In this document: positions 2-10,096 of the stretch, piece by piece | Position numbering within the stretch: position 1 is the stretch's first letter | How the letters are laid out: each line of letters begins with the position of its first letter | Virus record (IMG/VR): IMGVR_UViG_3300033159_000018 | Coordinates: 1-12,725 of that record | Reading direction: 5' to 3' (one strand) | Length of the DNA: 12,725 bases | Made by a program: the position numbers and the translations under genes | The notes under the pieces: generated by a model | What the model was told of the DNA's origin: nothing | Database searches by the model: none | Seen by the model: only the letters and a program-made list of their open reading frames with translations

Positions 2-454
2 TTCAGAGACGGTATATATGATGTTGATGTAAAGGGAAGGACAGTAGTTGATGTCGGTGCGGGGATAGGAGATTCGTCAATTTATTTTGCGTTGAACGGT
101 GCAAAGAAAGTCTATGCGTTTGACGTCAACACGACTTACTTAGAGAAGAACATAAGGGAAAACGATCTAAAAGACGTTGTTGAGCCAGTTCGTTGTGAAT
201 GCGGGCTTTCGAATAATTTAGATATTATAACGCTGAAATACAATATTCCTTCTGGGTCTGTACTTAAAGTAGATTGTGAAGGGTGTGAATACGATTTCTT
301 TAGTACTGCTCCACCACGTTGGATAAATAGATATCATACAATTATTATAGAATATCATAACGGCGTTCAACATCTTGCAGATCTACTTAGAGCATCAAGG
401 TTTAACGTTACGATTAAAGGAAACAGGAAGATCGGCTTGATATATGCAAGGTGA
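2..454 (+). CDS. FkbM-family SAM-dependent methyltransferase, 5'-truncated by the window edge
   Basis: The frame is open from base 2 and reads FRDGIYDVDVKGRTVVDVGAGIGDSSIYFALNGAKKVYAFD. It has SAM motif I (VVDVGAGIG), the FkbM-type LKVDCEGCE motif and IIIEYH. The track's start at 92 is internal. Confidence 0.88.
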   Translation, partial: FRDGIYDVDVKGRTVVDVGAGIGDSSIYFALNGAKKVYAFDVNTTYLEKNIRENDLKDVVEPVRCECGLSNNLDIITLKYNIPSGSVLKVDCEGCEYDFFSTAPPRWINRYHTIIIEYHNGVQHLADLLRASRFNVTIKGNRKIGLIYAR

Positions 455-460
455 TATGGG

Positions 461-1420
461 ATGAATCAGTATGATACACGAATAGCCCAATTACGTTTCT
501 TCGCATCCTTTTCCGTCGCTTTATATCACCTATGGACTCTTCAATTAATCCCCCTTGTGTTGTTTCGTCCTGGTTGGTTGGGCGTTCCCCTATTTTTCGA
601 GTTATCGATTTTTCTGCTCCTTAACAGGCTCGATGCAAATCCCTCACTCACTCATTACTTCAAAAGGAGGGTGAGGAGGATATGGCCACTTTATTTTCTC
701 GCCGTCGTCGTAGTATTCTTAGCCGACAGATATGTGCTCCACATGGACGTGACATATTACGACTTGATACTCCATTTTACGTTCGTTTCCTTCGTCCTTG
801 TACCGTTTTCCTTCCAATATCTCTTCTGGTCTCTCCAGCTGGAGGAATGGATGTACTTAGCCATCCCCTTCGTCCATCGGATGAGCGATAAAGCAAAATT
901 TCAAACAGCTGTTTTATTGATTTTTACATCGTTTTTCTACAGCCTCTTCATCGTCTTCCTCCCCTACAACGAGTTCCGCTTACTTTACTTCATGCCTCCA
1001 TTCTGGTTAGGGGCATACGGGTGGGGGATAATTGCTTACCTTTTGAAGAAGAAACAGAAAGGTGTATCAGCCAACAAAAAAGCGAAATATTTCATACTAA
1101 TACTTTACGCTCAATATGTTTTTACTGCACTGATATCTTCCTCTAACGAATTTGTATATGAGTTCTTCACAAGGTTCCTGATTTACAACTTGGCGTTACC
1201 CGCTTTCGCCTTCCTTATCATTAACCCACCCAAGGTACTCAGTCGCGTGACGGTCTTCCTTGGAGAGGTAAGTTATGGAGTTTATTTGTGGACTTTACTA
1301 TTTCAGGAACTTTTTGGGATAAGTGGAATACTTTACGGCATACTGACCGCTATCGCAACTGAGTTCCCACTGAGAAAAAGAGAAATAATAAGTAGGTTGA
1401 GTTCCCACTCAGCTCTATAA
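461..1420 (+). CDS. Acyltransferase family 3 (OafA/Oac-like) integral membrane O-acyltransferase
   Basis: Multi-TM protein with family motifs LRxxAxxxVxxYH, GVPLFFxLS, FKRRVRRIWPLY, WSLQLEEWMY and LGEVSYGVYL. Confidence 0.9.
   Translation: MNQYDTRIAQLRFFASFSVALYHLWTLQLIPLVLFRPGWLGVPLFFELSIFLLLNRLDANPSLTHYFKRRVRRIWPLYFLAVVVVFLADRYVLHMDVTYYDLILHFTFVSFVLVPFSFQYLFWSLQLEEWMYLAIPFVHRMSDKAKFQTAVLLIFTSFFYSLFIVFLPYNEFRLLYFMPPFWLGAYGWGIIAYLLKKKQKGVSANKKAKYFILILYAQYVFTALISSSNEFVYEFFTRFLIYNLALPAFAFLIINPPKVLSRVTVFLGEVSYGVYLWTLLFQELFGISGILYGILTAIATEFPLRKREIISRLSSHSAL
903..914. repeat. Palindrome AAACAGCTGTTT, intragenic copy
   Basis: Perfect 12-mer inside the acyltransferase gene. Confidence 0.7.
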
Positions 1421-1427
1421 AAAAGTT

Positions 1428-2348
1428 TCACATCCTCGCAATAATGTATAGGTAGTCTTCTCTGAGTTGTTTATATTTTACGTAAGCTTCATCTGGTAAT
1501 AATCGTGGGGTGTATACTACATGTGCAAAGTTCTTTTTCAGCTCGTTCTTCAGTAGAAGCCCGACGTTGATACTGTTGTAATCCCTAAGCGGGTGTTTAG
1601 TTTTCAACAATTTCCCTGTGATGTCTACAACGTTCTTATATACGTGCGACTCAGACGTCGTCATCGTCCGTGGTACTACTGTTACAGCATAAGACGATGG
1701 CATGGCTTTCATCAGCACACCAGACAGTCTCGTTTCCGACGGTATAGTCATAAGCACGTTGCTAAACTTTATCGCCCACGTCTGTGCGTATTTATGTATC
1801 TTTTCTAGCCTCAATCTATCCATTTTTCCTACCTGTTTGCCGAACCCTATCCCAGCGTCGTCTATAATTATCATCGGGATCTTGCTTATTCCGTAATTTT
1901 TCATCGCCTCGATCAGGTCGTCGAGCTGTAAGGGGTCGATGATAATGTGTGCGATGGCGACGTCCCAGTCGCCGTACAGTGCATATGCGAGCCACAACGC
2001 TAATGAGGATTTGCCTCCCCTAGCCTCCCCGCTGATGATCGTCGTTTGACCCGTGTCGATAGGGACAGGTCTGATTTTCATGAACTTGTGTTCCTTTCTG
2101 TCTATCGCGATTTGGTATATTGTATGCATCATGAGAACCGTTAGGTCTGCAATACCTTCCATGTAATATTTTCTAGACAGATCAATGTACTGCTTCTCCA
2201 TGTATGGGAAATCGATGAACTTTACATTGCCCTCATACACCTGTGTGTAGTATTTATCGAACATCGGCAATAACGAGTTGTAATCTACCTTCAGGAGTGC
2301 CTCCTCTGGGTTTGTGTCGTTTAACTTTATGTAATCATTTATTTGCAT
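1428..2348 (-). CDS. P-loop NTPase (viral ATPase)
   Basis: Walker A GEARGGKS and Walker B MIIIDD. The ATG at 2348 follows GGGAG and overlaps the end of the upstream 170-aa gene, implying translational coupling. Confidence 0.85.
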   Translation of the reverse strand: MQINDYIKLNDTNPEEALLKVDYNSLLPMFDKYYTQVYEGNVKFIDFPYMEKQYIDLSRKYYMEGIADLTVLMMHTIYQIAIDRKEHKFMKIRPVPIDTGQTTIISGEARGGKSSLALWLAYALYGDWDVAIAHIIIDPLQLDDLIEAMKNYGISKIPMIIIDDAGIGFGKQVGKMDRLRLEKIHKYAQTWAIKFSNVLMTIPSETRLSGVLMKAMPSSYAVTVVPRTMTTSESHVYKNVVDITGKLLKTKHPLRDYNSINVGLLLKNELKKNFAHVVYTPRLLPDEAYVKYKQLREDYLYIIARM

Positions 2349-2847
2349 CAACTCCCACCTTCTCCATTATTTCTTTTTTCAAAAGCTCATAATCTTCAGG
2401 CTTCCAAACCTTAATTATGCTGTAGTGGTCTTTCTGACCTCTCTCGAACACGACGGGTTTGGGCAATTTAATTTTCACCGTACTTACTTTTTCCGCGGGA
2501 TATACATATTTTATAATAAGGTTCTGGTCGTCAAACTGTAAATCGTAGACCTTCTTGGGGAGGAAGAGTAAATTGGTCACGTTGTATGTACGTTCTTCTT
2601 TAGCTAATTTGACCACTATCTTTTCTGGAAACAGTAAAACGTTGTATATGCCCTTCTTTTTCACGTTTATTGTTACCGTAGTCCTGGATTTCCTTTTGGC
2701 TTCAGGGTCGTTGCAATCTGCTTGGTATAATTCGTAAACGTCATCTCCTATTTCCTTGACCTTATAGCACTCCCAGGGAAACGAATATATCTTGACGTCA
2801 TGGTTATGGGTCTTTACTCTCCTTATTTTTTTCTTGTAGCCTTTCAT
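2335..2847 (-). CDS. Hypothetical basic protein (170 aa), co-transcribed with the ATPase
   Basis: Long ORF with a TTTAAA box about 25-30 nt upstream (leaderless). It overlaps the ATPase start. Confidence 0.75.
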   Translation of the reverse strand: MKGYKKKIRRVKTHNHDVKIYSFPWECYKVKEIGDDVYELYQADCNDPEAKRKSRTTVTINVKKKGIYNVLLFPEKIVVKLAKEERTYNVTNLLFLPKKVYDLQFDDQNLIIKYVYPAEKVSTVKIKLPKPVVFERGQKDHYSIIKVWKPEDYELLKKEIMEKVGVDANK

Positions 2848-4560: not shown

Positions 4561-4896
4561 ATGATTACCCAAAAAGAAATGGTTTCGGCAATTTATAACT
4601 GTGTTAAGAAACATGAAAAACACCTCGTAGACGAGAAGGCTTTTTTGATTTCTCTTTCTGTAGGAATCCCTATAGACGATTTTTACGAAATTGATGATCA
4701 CCTTACTTATCGTGGTCTGATAAACAGTTATATTGCTGACTGCGAAAGTTATTTGTCTACAATAGATAAATACGATGAGAAAACAGTTTTAGAGGCTTCT
4801 CTGCACATGTTTAACTTAATAAGGAGAGGAGTGCGTGGGAAGTTAAACGAGAAAGCCTCAAAATTGCTCTCGGAACTTAATATATTCCATGGATAG
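4561..4896 (+). CDS. Hypothetical protein (111 aa), paralog of 5474-5812
   Basis: Shares NC..H..H, AFLI, C..Y, YDEKT and KLLSEL with the 112-aa protein. Leaderless start after TTTATTTG (4532-4539). Confidence 0.8.
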   Translation: MITQKEMVSAIYNCVKKHEKHLVDEKAFLISLSVGIPIDDFYEIDDHLTYRGLINSYIADCESYLSTIDKYDEKTVLEASLHMFNLIRRGVRGKLNEKASKLLSELNIFHG

Positions 4897-5473: not shown

Positions 5474-5812
5474 TTAGACCTTAATACCCAGTTCAGATAA
5501 TAGCTTTTTCTCTCTATCGGTAAACTTCACTTCTTTATTAGCGTAATAATACCACAATTTAACGCTCACATCCCTAATAGTTTTTTCGTCGTAAGAAGAG
5601 AAGATCTTAACATATTGGCTACACTCACCTTTTGCGTCCTCTAATTTATCGAAATAAGCAACATAATCAGTATCAGGTGCGAAAAACTCTAAATCGTCCC
5701 CCTTAGCTGAAGCTATTAGAAAAGCCATTGAATTCACTAATTTATGATCGTTAAAATGCTCACTTAAACAGTTTATGTAGGAAGAAATCCTCCATCTATC
5801 GAGTGATAGCAT
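5474..5812 (-). CDS. Hypothetical protein (112 aa), paralog of 4561-4896
   Basis: Ungapped 49-residue alignment from AFLI to YDEKT with the 111-aa protein. Strong BRE/TATA and a GGGG SD. Confidence 0.8.
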   Translation of the reverse strand: MLSLDRWRISSYINCLSEHFNDHKLVNSMAFLIASAKGDDLEFFAPDTDYVAYFDKLEDAKGECSQYVKIFSSYDEKTIRDVSVKLWYYYANKEVKFTDREKKLLSELGIKV

Positions 5813-7113: not shown

Positions 7114-7695
7114 CTACCTCGGCTTTGCGAAAAAATCCAGGATACTGCTTTGCCTGCCGTGGGACTTACTTACCAGTTGCTGTATTTCTTTCAGTTTCCT
7201 CCTTATGTAATTGACGTCCTTTAACTGCTGAAATCTGCCGAGTAACATCAAAGTAACGTCTCCGTAGTCGAAAGAATAGAATAAGGCTTCTTTCAGCTCG
7301 TGCCTAGTAGAAATGCCAAGATACCAGTGCTGGTATTTAGACGCTTTAATGAAATCATGGATTGTATAGTCTCTGTACTTCGGATCAGACGCGTATCCTG
7401 CAATCACTTTATAGTTATTTTCCCTCAGCTTGTCGGCAATTTCTAGCTGGCTCAGGGTATGAATAGGGACAACGTAAGCTATGTTCTTTGGGACTGGAAG
7501 AACGTAATTAATATTGTCTGGGTATAACGCTACCTCTATCTTGTTTCTGTTAAACCAGAGTTCCCTCAAGTATTTCTTATAATTTCTCTCTATAAGCAAC
7601 GCCTTTTTGTTGTCAAAAAACCTGGGGTATATTATATAGCCAGTGACGTCTTGAAGCTTCTGAATTAGAGGGTTATAGCCTAATGCTAGAATCAT
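7114..7695 (-). CDS. Protein of about 193 aa with a C-terminal PIP box; possible divergent TGT/DpdA-like barrel
   Basis: The true start is likely the ATG at 7695 (SD GGGGG, TATA TTTAAATA at 7735-7728). The C-terminus QSSILDFF matches the PCNA-interaction consensus QxxIxxFF. Confidence 0.65.
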   Translation of the reverse strand: MILALGYNPLIQKLQDVTGYIIYPRFFDNKKALLIERNYKKYLRELWFNRNKIEVALYPDNINYVLPVPKNIAYVVPIHTLSQLEIADKLRENNYKVIAGYASDPKYRDYTIHDFIKASKYQHWYLGISTRHELKEALFYSFDYGDVTLMLLGRFQQLKDVNYIRRKLKEIQQLVSKSHGRQSSILDFFAKPR

Positions 7696-7783
7696 TTTAA
7701 CCCCCATTAGTACCCTGGGCATGAAGTTATTTAAATTTCTAACGAGTTGTGCAGAACTGCGACGGGTGGGTGAGTCGAACAAA

Positions 7784-7805
7784 CCCTCAAACAGCTGTTT
7801 GAGGG
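7784..7805. promoter_or_regulatory. Palindromic operator CCCTCAAACAGCTGTTTGAGGG
   Basis: 22-bp perfect palindrome about 63 bp upstream of the TATA of the 7695 gene. Confidence 0.8.
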
Positions 7806-7899
7806 AAAAATGCCGTTCGACCAACCCCAGCGTGCTGAGCCAGCCTGCACGGGGAAAGGGTATAAAACAAACCGTTCTTTCTCTTCATAAAAAATAAAA

Positions 7900-8196
7900 T
7901 CATACCTTCGCTTCTAGATTGACTATAATGAAGTCCTTGTCGAGTGTCAATATCCAGCCGTAGTCCTTCATTTTCCTCAGGATGTTGTAAGCTTCCAGGG
8001 CGTCGCATTCCATAAAAGCGGAGGCAAGCTTGATCAACCTCTCCCTGTCAATGCTTAGGACTCCGTGTCTGCACTCTGTTATGCTGACAAGGAACCTGTG
8101 AAACTCGACGGCTTTCCTGTACTCGTCTTCAGTCATAGCCGTCGCTAGACCGTCAATATAACTGTTGGTTTTTGAAATTCTTTTCGTACTTTTCAT
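7900..8196 (-). CDS. Probable winged-helix DNA-binding protein (98 aa)
   Basis: The helix-turn-helix and wing pattern RERLIKLASAFMECDALEAYNILRKMKDYGWILTLDKDFIIV. Leaderless start after TTAATAAA. Confidence 0.6.
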   Translation of the reverse strand: MKSTKRISKTNSYIDGLATAMTEDEYRKAVEFHRFLVSITECRHGVLSIDRERLIKLASAFMECDALEAYNILRKMKDYGWILTLDKDFIIVNLEAKV

Positions 8197-8834
8197 AACT
8201 TGAATATAACCACTTATGGTTTATTAACTTTACCGTGTTTCTCTCAATAGACCATGAAGTTATTGAAAAAGTAACAACTCGGTGAAATTAACCCCTATAT
8301 AATATTAAACAAAAAATAAAAGGGAATAAACCCAGGGCTATAGCAAGTGTGCTACAAGGGCTACAAGGCTTACTAGGGGGCTTACTGGGGGCTTTTACAG
8401 TACGCTACACTAGTAGCTCCTTATATTATATTATATTTAGTTTTTAGATAGAGATACTTTACAGTATACTAGACACGTGCAACGACTGCCCTGTTTCTGT
8501 TCACGCCGTCAATTTCTACCCTTACACTAAAAATTTCTCTTCATAAAGTACGTCGTTTTAGGAAAAATTTCTGTTCATCACATTAATAATTGTAATTTAT
8601 TTCTGTTCATGTCTTCCCAGGATTTCCATCCTTATAAAGAAATAAAATGAAAACAGTGCTGGTCTAGACATTAATTTTGTAATAACTCCCAGCTTTACGA
8701 GGAGAAATTGTAAAGAATTTTTGGTAATGCAGAAGAAAGTTTTTGAAATTAAACCTGAGACTTACGTTCTTTGAATTTTTATTACTAAAATGAGAAAAAA
8801 AGTTGATAAAGTTAGGCGTCGGGATTAACGCTTT
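8197..8834. other. Long AT-rich non-coding region with short repeats; candidate replication origin
   Basis: About 640 bp with no ORF. It contains tandem GCTACAAGG x2 (8351-8368), CTTACT(A)GGGGG x2 (8369-8391), and TTTCT(G/C)TTCA x4 at 8494, 8534, 8568 and 8600. Confidence 0.45.
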
Positions 8835-9527
8835 TTAACGTTCGGGGAACTTGGGCTTCAACGCCCAAGCCTCAAGAATGTGGGTAGGGATATTGAAGCC
8901 CAACCCCTCAATGATGGTCTTCAAAAAGTTAAATATCCTGTCAAACTTGAATGTGAATTTTGTTATTTCAACTAATTTTTGTAGCCTGAAAATTATCTTG
9001 GTATATATCCATTGCTTTACAGAATCCAGCGTCGTAAACGCTTCTACCTTATGTTTCTTTAATATCTCCTTAGCCCCTGGACTGAATGAAAAAGCCACGA
9101 TACCAGGGAAAACATGATACCCTTTGGCTCGCAGTTTATTTACTATTTTATAGATCTGGTTGAGTTTCCACGGCAACTGAGATGGCACGATTGGCTTAGA
9201 AGTTTGGAACGAGAAATAGATAACGAAAGCAGTTTTCCTCTGCTTCTTAGTCCATTCACTAGTCCATGGATCTTCCAACAGAAGCACAAGTATTTTTCCT
9301 CCATATCCATCTTCATGAACTTCAATAGATCCCCTTTCTTCTTTGATTCGTGTTTTCGCCCACCGTGGCAAATTTATCAGATCTATTACGTCCTTAATAC
9401 CGAGCAATTGTTTCCTTAAACTGCCAAAGATCTTTATGACTTGTCCCTTTATCTCGTATAAAGAAAGAGATTGAGAGAAAAGTTTATTAGCAGAAGAAGA
9501 TACATTATTTATTGACCTAAACGCCAT
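8835..9527 (-). CDS. Hypothetical protein (230 aa), possible degenerate restriction-endonuclease (Mrr-like) fold
   Basis: Long ORF with a GGTGGGGG SD-like site. The segment GIVAFSFSPGAKEILKKHKVEAF resembles the Mrr-type C-terminal motif, but no clear catalytic (D/E)xK is visible. Confidence 0.6.
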   Translation of the reverse strand: MAFRSINNVSSSANKLFSQSLSLYEIKGQVIKIFGSLRKQLLGIKDVIDLINLPRWAKTRIKEERGSIEVHEDGYGGKILVLLLEDPWTSEWTKKQRKTAFVIYFSFQTSKPIVPSQLPWKLNQIYKIVNKLRAKGYHVFPGIVAFSFSPGAKEILKKHKVEAFTTLDSVKQWIYTKIIFRLQKLVEITKFTFKFDRIFNFLKTIIEGLGFNIPTHILEAWALKPKFPER

Positions 9528-9772: not shown

Positions 9773-10096
9773 ATGAAAATAAAATTGAACCCCGAGATGA
9801 GTGTCGTAACCTTTAAGTTAGAGGAGGATCTACTCCAAAAACTCGATTTATATGCTATGAAGTCAGGGTTAACTAGAAGCGATGTGATTAGAGAAGCACT
9901 GGAATCCTATGATTGGGGGAATAAGAAGAAAATAATGCCAATTCGTATTCGTACGATAACAGTTAAACTGGAGGGGGAGTTATTGCAAAAGCTCGATTTA
10001 TACGCTGTGAATGCAAGGGTAACTAGAAGTCAGGTAATTAGAGAAGCTCTCAAACATTATCTATCCTCATTTGATGGTGAGGGCGGTGAGCAATGA
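9773..10096 (+). CDS. Tandem ribbon-helix-helix transcription factor, aCcr1/CdrS-like
   Basis: Two RHH units: [33 protein letters not shown] and [33 protein letters not shown]. The duplication is also visible at the DNA level. Confidence 0.88.

Follow-up and report, generated by a model that had tools for sequence, protein, structure and literature searches.

A TIM-barrel protein with a predicted clamp-binding tail in Sulfolobales mobile elements, possibly a diverged relative of the TGT/DpdA transglycosylases

The nearest family to the protein considered here, as judged by ESM features, hhalign and reciprocal Foldseek, is DUF6610, which was renamed DpdA4 by Cui, Hutinet and co-workers, has HVTV1_69 as its type and was linked to TGT at 92.5% by HHpred; singleton DpdA4 genes were reported in other archaeal viruses (PMC10516641). 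The gene in question occupies positions 7114-7695, stop codon included, on the minus strand of a 12.7-kb fragment (12,725 nucleotides; hereafter the window) of the IMG/VR viral record IMGVR_UViG_3300033159_000018, and its product of 193 residues is a member of the uncharacterised PHROG 17844/ATV ORF192 family. Like DpdA4, it is a small TIM-barrel protein of archaeal viruses that lacks the TGT zinc site, its strand-end motifs appear to follow the same order (FxD, AxxD, VVP[KH], GY[SA], [HW]xLG, then an invariant Asp), and its gene is often a singleton, i.e. without genes for deazaguanine synthesis. Unlike DpdA4, the PHROG 17844 protein is not detected by the PF20314 hidden Markov model (HMM), HMM cross-matches between the families being marginal, has seven barrel strands rather than eight, carries a canonical C-terminal PCNA-interacting peptide (PIP) box, and occurs in viruses and plasmids of Sulfolobales rather than in haloarchaeal tailed viruses. 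FolE or Que genes do not adjoin it, in contrast to Halovirus HVTV-1, in which HVTV1_69 was located beside the FolE gene.

TGT, arcTGT and bacterial DpdA (PF01702, PF23859; e.g. 3unt, 1iq8, 7ui4) have in common with the PHROG 17844 protein a TIM barrel and, it appears, the order of three aspartates, of which the first two are also similarly spaced. By contrast with TGT, the protein is about half the size and lacks the zinc subdomain and the PUA or C-terminal domains; it gives no sequence-profile match to TGT, and its structural score against TGT is no better than against unrelated barrels. With respect to its tail, the relevant comparison is with archaeal PCNA clients that have terminal PIP boxes, including Sulfolobus FEN1, Dpo4, UDG1, XPF and Lig1, which it resembles in having a catalytic domain from which a flexible linker leads to a terminal Qxx[ILM]xx[FY][FY] motif, here predicted to lie under the interdomain connector loop. 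It differs from them in being a TIM barrel of unassigned activity that is encoded by mobile elements, not by the host. PCNA recruitment has been reported for SIRV2 gp1 and other rudiviral proteins (Gardner et al. 2014, as related in PMC5537682); the PHROG 17844 protein is like SIRV2 gp1 in coming from Sulfolobales viruses and in its contact, here a predicted one, with the sliding clamp of the host, but it is unrelated in sequence and fold to that group, the members of which are small DNA-binding or nuclease-associated proteins and include no TIM barrel. The reading tentatively preferred here, to which we give somewhat less than an even chance, is that of a clamp-tethered small enzyme of Sulfolobales mobile elements, probably a diverged TGT/DpdA transglycosylase.

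The window (CheckV completeness 23%) is assigned, on the basis of its sequence, to a large spindle-shaped virus of Sulfolobales related to SMV1 and SMV3, because the Sulfolobus monocaudaviruses SMV1, SMV3 and SMV4 have 81-83% DNA identity to parts of it and its open reading frames (ORFs) match fusello/bicaudavirus PHROGs, a DnaA-like ATPase among them; an Rfam search of the window gave no match. The ORF runs on the minus strand, a detail that was not mentioned in the first-pass annotation of this DNA, from an ATG at 7695 to a TAG stop at 7116-7114; a plus-strand reading of 7114-7695 was rejected, having stops throughout. In most homologues the start is at the position of the MIL(A/I)GY sequence; one 94%-identical record is annotated from further upstream, and an alternative in-frame ATG at 7707-7705 gives a possible four-codon N-terminal extension (MGVK-; 7696-7707, minus strand). 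A TTG start at 7824, giving 236 residues, was rejected because the added stretch is not conserved and covers a promoter palindrome. The TATA-like TTTAAATA (7728-7735, minus strand), approximately 21-33 nt upstream of the two candidate ATGs, is a putative archaeal promoter.

Assignment to PHROG 17844 comes from a full-length profile match at E 1.8e-78, in which residues 1-189 align with positions 3-200 of a profile of 201. The homologues are 27-94% identical to the protein, and in a Foldseek comparison its model matches ATV ORF192 at E 1.3e-18 (TM 0.87). Among viruses, members of the family are present in SMV3, ATV (ORF192), the rudiviruses ARV2 and SSRV1, and a complete viral contig of 50 kb; 13 Sulfolobales plasmid records, including the conjugative pNOB8, pING1, pARN3/4 and pAH1, carry a member, and there are chromosomal copies, one of which, in a Stygiolobus genome, adjoins an integrase. 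No homologue was detected in SMV1, SMV4 or STSV2. Given this patchy spread over viruses, plasmids and chromosomes, the gene is, as far as its distribution indicates, an accessory one exchanged among unrelated mobile elements. A literature search found no paper on the PHROG 17844/ATV ORF192 family.

The first-pass annotation had identified a canonical C-terminal PIP box, and this stands: QSSILDFF (residues 182-189; 7129-7152, minus strand) fits the consensus Qxx[ILM]xx[FY][FY], with the C terminus five residues further on, and lies in a flexible tail that follows a barrel spanning residues 1-177 and that has pLDDT values below 50 in the AF2 model, save for a short helix at 185-189. Loss of the motif from homologues had been named as grounds for abandoning the proposal, and the opposite was found, the glutamine being invariant in all 22 close homologues (38-94% identity) and the full Qxx[IL]xx[FY]x motif present in 15 of them. 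In a wider set of 67 full-length members, drawn from an exhaustive profile search in which only 59 clusters are at E<=1e-3, the strict pattern occurs within the last 22 residues of 19, compared with a mean of 0.7 for shuffled tails, which never gave more than 4 over 1000 shuffles, an enrichment of approximately 27-fold; with a relaxed pattern the figures are 32 of 67 and 10.7. Variants are found in very distant members, e.g. the rudivirus ARV2 protein, which ends in ..NSTLFDYIK. The aromatic pair is absent in some members; ATV ORF192 ends in QLTLF, and several others end in QTxLF or have no motif.

In the complex prediction, residues 158-193 were paired with PCNA1 of S. solfataricus, the only PCNA subunit tried. 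The resulting ipSAE of 0.82 (0.81-0.82 over three runs), as against 0.03 for the best control, is a mark that 51 of 78 solved complexes attain, along with 2 of 108 mismatched pairs. It is to be read as likeness rather than binding, since the model may be reproducing solved PIP-PCNA complexes. The runs share at least 82% of their contacts, and the partner pLDDT is at least 62. Residues 181-190 are predicted to contact PCNA1 residues 40-47, 126-130, 227-228 and 244-249, i.e. the interdomain connector loop and C-terminal pocket that constitute the canonical PIP pocket. On the basis of the conserved motif and the predicted docking, there is good support for the proposal that the protein would bind host PCNA.

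The barrel fold had been called tentatively, and modelling now allows it to be assigned with confidence. The AF2 model, built with a 22-sequence alignment, has pLDDT 89.1 and pTM 0.83, with alternating strands and helices and a long helix (161-176) at the end; DSSP defines seven strands and resolves no eighth. Foldseek and VIA-align searches with this model returned TIM barrels only, with 160-176 residues aligned and Z scores of up to 11.0; the best VIA match is 3c6c (Z 11.0, 174 residues aligned, root-mean-square deviation 3.4), and the matches include BKACE (Z 11.0), KDPG aldolases (Z about 10) and endonuclease IV (3aam, Z 9.6). Foldseek against the PDB gave nothing at E<=0.001, i.e. generic TIM barrels only. 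The predicted fold is thus a compact (beta/alpha) TIM-type barrel.

Across 47 diverse members, which share just 19-45% identity with the protein, seven residues are invariant (F26, D28, D60, H79, W124, G127 and D146) and nine are near-invariant (P24, A56, P59, P77, G100, R108, Y110, F142 and T148). R108 and Y110 belong to the loop that follows strand 5; all the others are placed at, or directly behind, the C-terminal ends of strands 2-7, and TIM-barrel enzymes have their active sites at the C-terminal strand ends. The clustering of the invariant residues in the model speaks against a passive clamp plug and for an enzyme and, with the basic isoelectric point of 9.6, for one that could act on nucleic acid.

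Five strand motifs had been read from the sequence in the order seen in TGT/DpdA-like barrels; all five are present in that order, and they hold most of the invariant residues of the family. All lie on the minus strand, and ahead of them, after strand 2, is FFD (residues 26-28; 7612-7620), with F26 and D28 invariant, which aligns with FxD of DUF6610. ALYPD, at the end of strand 3 (residues 56-60; 7516-7530), contains D60 and aligns with (V)AxD of DUF6610; YVVPIH in strand 4 (residues 74-79; 7459-7476) contains H79 and aligns with VVPK/H. VIAGYASD in strand 5 (residues 97-104, of which VIAGYAS is 97-103; 7384-7407), containing the near-invariant G100, aligns with GYSVPT, and HWYLGIS in strand 6 (residues 123-129; 7309-7329), containing W124 and G127, with HLLGG. 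FDYGDVT in strand 7 (residues 142-148, of which FDYGD is 142-146; 7252-7272) contains D146, a candidate equivalent of the TGT-family nucleophile Asp, i.e. SID in DUF6610 and FDS in arcTGT; this equivalence comes from motif order only, the hhalign alignment stopping at residue 142.

The kinship with TGT/DpdA is suggested by a convergence of individually weak and independent leads, namely ESM features, hhalign and a BFVD search with a DUF6610 model. Of the ESM Atlas cluster to which the protein belongs, 12% of members carry PF20314, and the score of a DUF6610 cluster is 0.93 (203 of 256 features shared); once PF20314 is left out, PF23859 (DpdA) is the first family with a name, at 0.84, and serves as a lead only. 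After HVTV1_69 had been located in HVTV-1, a DUF6610 alignment was built, and hhalign of the PHROG 17844 family against it gave E 0.0014-0.0055 over 108-110 collinear columns, at a probability of 7-18%, pairing FFD28 with FxD, ALYPD60 with VAxD, VVPIH79 with VVPK/H, GYAS with GYSV and WYLG with HLLGG. The hhalign score of 25.5 exceeds those of all 40 block shuffles (maximum 23.1) and of reversed profiles (11-12). Reciprocal HMM matches in small targeted sets gave E 0.003-0.01, and each time the segment concerned was P-x-F-[FL]-D ... A-x-x-D. A DUF6610 protein modelled with AF2 (pLDDT 91) has eight strands in total, with the same motifs on six consecutive ones; in BFVD the matches to this model are DpdA/TGT proteins of phages (E 1e-5 to 4e-4), the ARV2 member of the PHROG 17844 family (E 7.3e-4) and ATV ORF192 (E 3.8e-3), and in the PDB it matches arcTGT at Z 13.8 (217 residues aligned), TGT at 12.8 and DpdA 7ui4 at Z 11.8, other barrels tying with these. 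DUF6610 likewise lacks the TGT zinc site. A distant kinship of the PHROG 17844 family with DUF6610/DpdA4, and through it with TGT-type transglycosylases, is thus suggested, with moderate support; by transitivity, as far as the sequences go, D28, D60 and D146 may correspond to the three functional aspartates of TGT.

The proposal of a TGT/DpdA-like barrel holds in part: the barrel stands, and the TGT/DpdA kinship is suggestive only, with the motif order and the DUF6610 leads speaking for it and the following evidence against it. The HMMs for TGT (PF01702) and DUF6610 (PF20314) match neither the protein nor its homologues, and all Pfam, NCBIfam and PADLOC models fail on it and 47 relatives. For PF20314, nothing was found at E<=10 in the window, SMV3, ATV or ARV2, nor in any of the 47 members (Pfam threshold 27 bits), with HVTV-1 as a positive control at 2.9e-58; PF01702 gave no match in the window or in four carrier genomes, and matched all 14 controls. 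Sequence and profile searches of the PDB with the protein and the family profile returned noise only, and a match to Shigella OspC (E 0.007) was discounted, being below the cut-off and covering a helical stretch. The hhalign probability against DUF6610 is low, the alignment ends short of the putative nucleophile motif, and the family HMMs are marginal against DUF6610 proteins, with E values that rest on small hand-picked sets. An hhalign comparison of the family with the single HVTV-1 DpdA4 sequence was uninformative, and one with a 31-sequence arcTGT profile gave nothing meaningful; a shallow alignment of DUF6610 with arcTGT reached E 0.24 only, its pairs being VAxD and the LD motif of arcTGT, HLLGG and HLFGAG, and SID and FDS.

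Structural comparison is similarly unspecific. A check by Foldseek and profile methods against TGT/DpdA, as the first-pass annotation had suggested, gave the hhalign link to DUF6610 at E of about 1e-3 on the one hand, and on the other a tie of TGT with other barrels, TGT 3unt_A ranking 39th against the model (VIA Z 9.7, 172 residues aligned, root-mean-square deviation 3.1) and not rising above unrelated TIM barrels (Z 9.4-11.0). arcTGT and DpdA 7ui4 are absent from the top 50 VIA matches, and a BFVD search with the model found a putative TGT of a Sulfolobales rudivirus only at E 0.03. The CxCxxC...H zinc site of TGT is absent in the family, the protein having no Cys and H79 as its sole invariant His, and one beta/alpha unit is absent from the barrel. 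The authors of the DpdA work report that tests of DpdA3 and DpdA4 in E. coli did not succeed (PMC10516641), so DpdA4 is itself a prediction. The docking in the clamp-tethering part of the proposal was to PCNA1 and may reflect solved complexes, and the plasmid setting described below (regulators, an integrase, possibly section C) suits other replication roles equally. STSV2 (JQ287645), which has been reported to encode a DpdA (PMC10516641), provides no bridge between the families, as PF01702 is silent there at E<=1 in a six-frame search and no PHROG 17844 homologue is present; the STSV2 DpdA must therefore also be highly diverged.

Several features of DpdA4 proteins were observed in passing. 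Haloviral DpdA4 (HVTV-1, L006:1456-2616, minus strand, and relatives P0084 and P0091) has a long acidic N-terminal extension and C termini ending in ..NVLEF, ..DVLDF or ..NVLDA, which may be a degenerate clamp-binding or other docking peptide. An uncultured phage protein (BFVD A0A6J5RUN9) combines DUF6610 with a ParB/sulfiredoxin domain, and a metagenomic protein (P0108) combines it with GNAT acetyltransferase domains, fusions that hint at DNA-associated or further modifying roles for DpdA4-like barrels.

It is quite possible, albeit not probable, that the protein is a PCNA-tethered TIM-barrel enzyme of other chemistry, with no homology-based link to TGT/DpdA, that functions in replication or repair of the element DNA, e.g. 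in DNA glycosylase or abasic (AP) site processing reactions, as a nuclease, or as a nucleotide- or sugar-modifying enzyme. Such an enzyme would be in keeping with the tie of TGT with BKACE, KDPG aldolases and endonuclease IV in the structure search and with the silence of the TGT and DUF6610 HMMs; the plasmid genes around it, a cluster of small regulators by an integrase that is possibly section C (replication initiation/regulation), and its conserved PHROG 17932 neighbour, which is not known from any DpdA system, are also consistent with this. However, the weak independent signals all name DUF6610/DpdA and no other TIM-barrel family, there being not even a marginal profile match to another family, and a trinuclear metal site of the endonuclease IV type needs many His/Glu ligands, whereas a single His is invariant here.

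The two remaining explanations differ in what they make of the tail. If the protein is mainly a non-catalytic PCNA-binding factor, with the barrel serving as a DNA- or protein-binding scaffold, it may sequester or redirect the clamp, so arresting host replication or recruiting PCNA to the origin of the element; the conserved PIP box with its predicted docking, the report that SIRV2 gp1 binds PCNA3 (as described in PMC5537682) and a plasmid position by regulators and an integrase, which may be a replication-linked section, can all be accommodated. Such a role is nevertheless improbable, since the seven invariant and nine near-invariant residues in the 47 members are nearly all on the catalytic face; the PCNA inhibitor that had been offered as an alternative is disfavoured by this strongly conserved, active-site-like face, and the stable presence of the gene on conjugative plasmids and integrated elements speaks against a clamp blocker with toxic effects. 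Alternatively, the C-terminal motif may not be a PCNA ligand at all, instead having another partner or a structural role, in which case the protein would be independent of the replisome. Members that lack the aromatic pair or end early (ATV ORF192 with QLTLF, others with QTxLF or no motif) would then be readily explained, as would a docking score that derives from likeness to solved complexes. This explanation is very improbable in view of the canonical match at the extreme C terminus behind a disordered linker, the enrichment of the strict motif across the family, and predicted contacts that are exactly those of the canonical PIP pocket.

In the proposed mechanism, that of a clamp-tethered, TGT/DpdA-type enzyme, a trimmed seven-strand TIM-type barrel would constitute the catalytic domain, followed by the long C-terminal helix, a flexible linker and the canonical PIP box. 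The PIP box would tether the enzyme to the heterotrimeric PCNA of the host, as its conservation and the complex prediction suggest, so that it could work on element DNA at or just behind the fork. The barrel would be a highly diverged member of the TGT/DpdA superfamily, closest to DUF6610, i.e. DpdA4 of haloarchaeal tailed viruses, and the parts of general base, base-recognition Asp and nucleophile in TGT would fall to D28, D60 and D146, respectively, as motif order and the weak profile and feature similarity indicate. The reaction would be the exchange of guanine in element DNA for a host-made 7-deazaguanine base, and its effect a low-level DNA marking that could blunt host nucleases; insertion of host-made 7-deazaguanine at the fork is, at this stage, purely hypothetical.

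The supply of such a base by the host is feasible, as far as gene content goes. The Stygiolobus genome in which an 81%-identical copy of the protein is encoded on an integrated element has arcTGT and a strong QueC match, both TGT and QueC are matched in the S. acidocaldarius control, and arcTGT is present in 37 of 41 sampled Thermoproteota genomes. Neither TGT nor QueC was found in the window, SMV3, ATV, ARV2 or the complete 50-kb relative, in searches that did not cover FolE, QueD and QueE separately.

The neighbours of the gene are regulators, integrases and genes of unknown function. In pNOB8, pING1, pARN3 and pAH1 it follows small helix-turn-helix regulators, in a stretch that also has a CopG gene and, in three of these four conjugative plasmids, an integrase; the plasmid locus may be the 'section C' that is tied in the literature to replication and regulation. 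Directly downstream in all four plasmids is a gene for a protein of 214-246 residues, a member of PHROG 17932 (214-247 residues), which is a candidate functional partner. In the window, the PHROG 17932 gene (230 residues; 8835-9527, minus strand) lies 1.2 kb upstream of the PHROG 17844 gene, as it does in SMV3; it is immediately downstream in the 50-kb viral contig, is elsewhere in ATV, and could be detected neither in ARV2 nor in the two genomes that have the PHROG 17844 gene in the chromosome. Homologues are located at L045:5608-6252, L046:3758-4498, L047:3594-4250, L048:3579-4235 and, in the 50-kb contig, L008:6667-7410. The family has the invariant signature D...FSxQxSKPxxPxQ, and no Pfam or PDB relatives were found. 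A claim that the gene pair is next to an origin was dropped, as the ORF-free stretch by the pair lacks the origin motif of the plasmids, TCTATACCCCC, which was found only approximately 3.9 kb away, in pAH1. A 98-residue gene (7900-8196, minus strand; PHROG 13045) with a weak winged-helix signal lies upstream in the window, is syntenic in SMV3, and is nearby in the 50-kb contig.

Approximately 90 nt upstream of the ATG is an 18-nt perfect palindrome, CTCAAACAGCTGTTTGAG (7786-7803, no strand). Its core, AAACAGCTGTTT, which is often extended to the full palindrome, has 10 copies in the window with at most one mismatch (903, 4464, 5431, 5913, 6694, 6774, 7789, 9661, 10777 and 11217), as against 0.08 expected, and nearly all of these precede ORFs, within short intergenic stretches; a regulator encoded by the virus, e.g. 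the tandem ribbon-helix-helix protein or a winged-helix protein, probably has its operator here. The ORF at 9773-10096 (plus strand) has two ribbon-helix-helix (CopG) domains that arose from a 94-nt tandem duplication, the units of which (9807-9900 and 9957-10050) are 77% identical.

Elsewhere in the window, a stretch of 640 bp (8197-8834) is free of ORFs of at least 50 residues, has short direct repeats (TTTCTGTTCAxGxCxTC at 8494 and 8600) and no Rfam match, and could be a regulatory or origin region. At the 5' end are a fragment of an FkbM/TRM5-like S-adenosylmethionine-dependent methyltransferase gene (2-454, plus strand) and a gene for an Acyl_transf_3 membrane acyltransferase (461-1420, plus strand), both virus-borne and of a glycan- or lipid-modification type; the pair is adjoined by the DnaA-like ATPase gene (1428-2351, minus strand), and the same acyltransferase is present in SMV1. 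The genes at 4561-4896 (plus strand) and 5474-5812 (minus strand) are placed divergently and encode paralogues of approximately 111 residues that are 27% identical and both match one SMV3 gene, and look like a local duplication with inversion.

The strongest version of the proposal, which is doubtful at present, is that the family constitutes a highly diverged, hitherto unrecognised 'DpdA5-like' branch of DNA transglycosylases that are coupled to the sliding clamp through a PIP box and write a host-derived 7-deazaguanine or another base into element DNA during replication. If so, the protein would be the first replisome-tethered base-exchange enzyme, and modification by base exchange would be coupled to the replisome, as opposed to the post-replicative event proposed in the published DpdA work. 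Crenarchaeal mobile elements would then have a DNA-modification system that is widespread but has stayed hidden, possibly involving the PHROG 17932 protein, and marking of the 7-deazaguanine type would extend to rudiviruses, bicaudaviruses and pNOB8-type conjugative plasmids of Sulfolobales; it would also provide a lead on the dCDG of STSV2 DNA, which is unexplained (PMC10516641). Even if the chemistry proves to be other than base exchange, the PHROG 17844 protein would be a conserved PCNA-client enzyme common to unrelated archaeal mobile elements, and its gene a tractable handle on how such elements use the host replisome.

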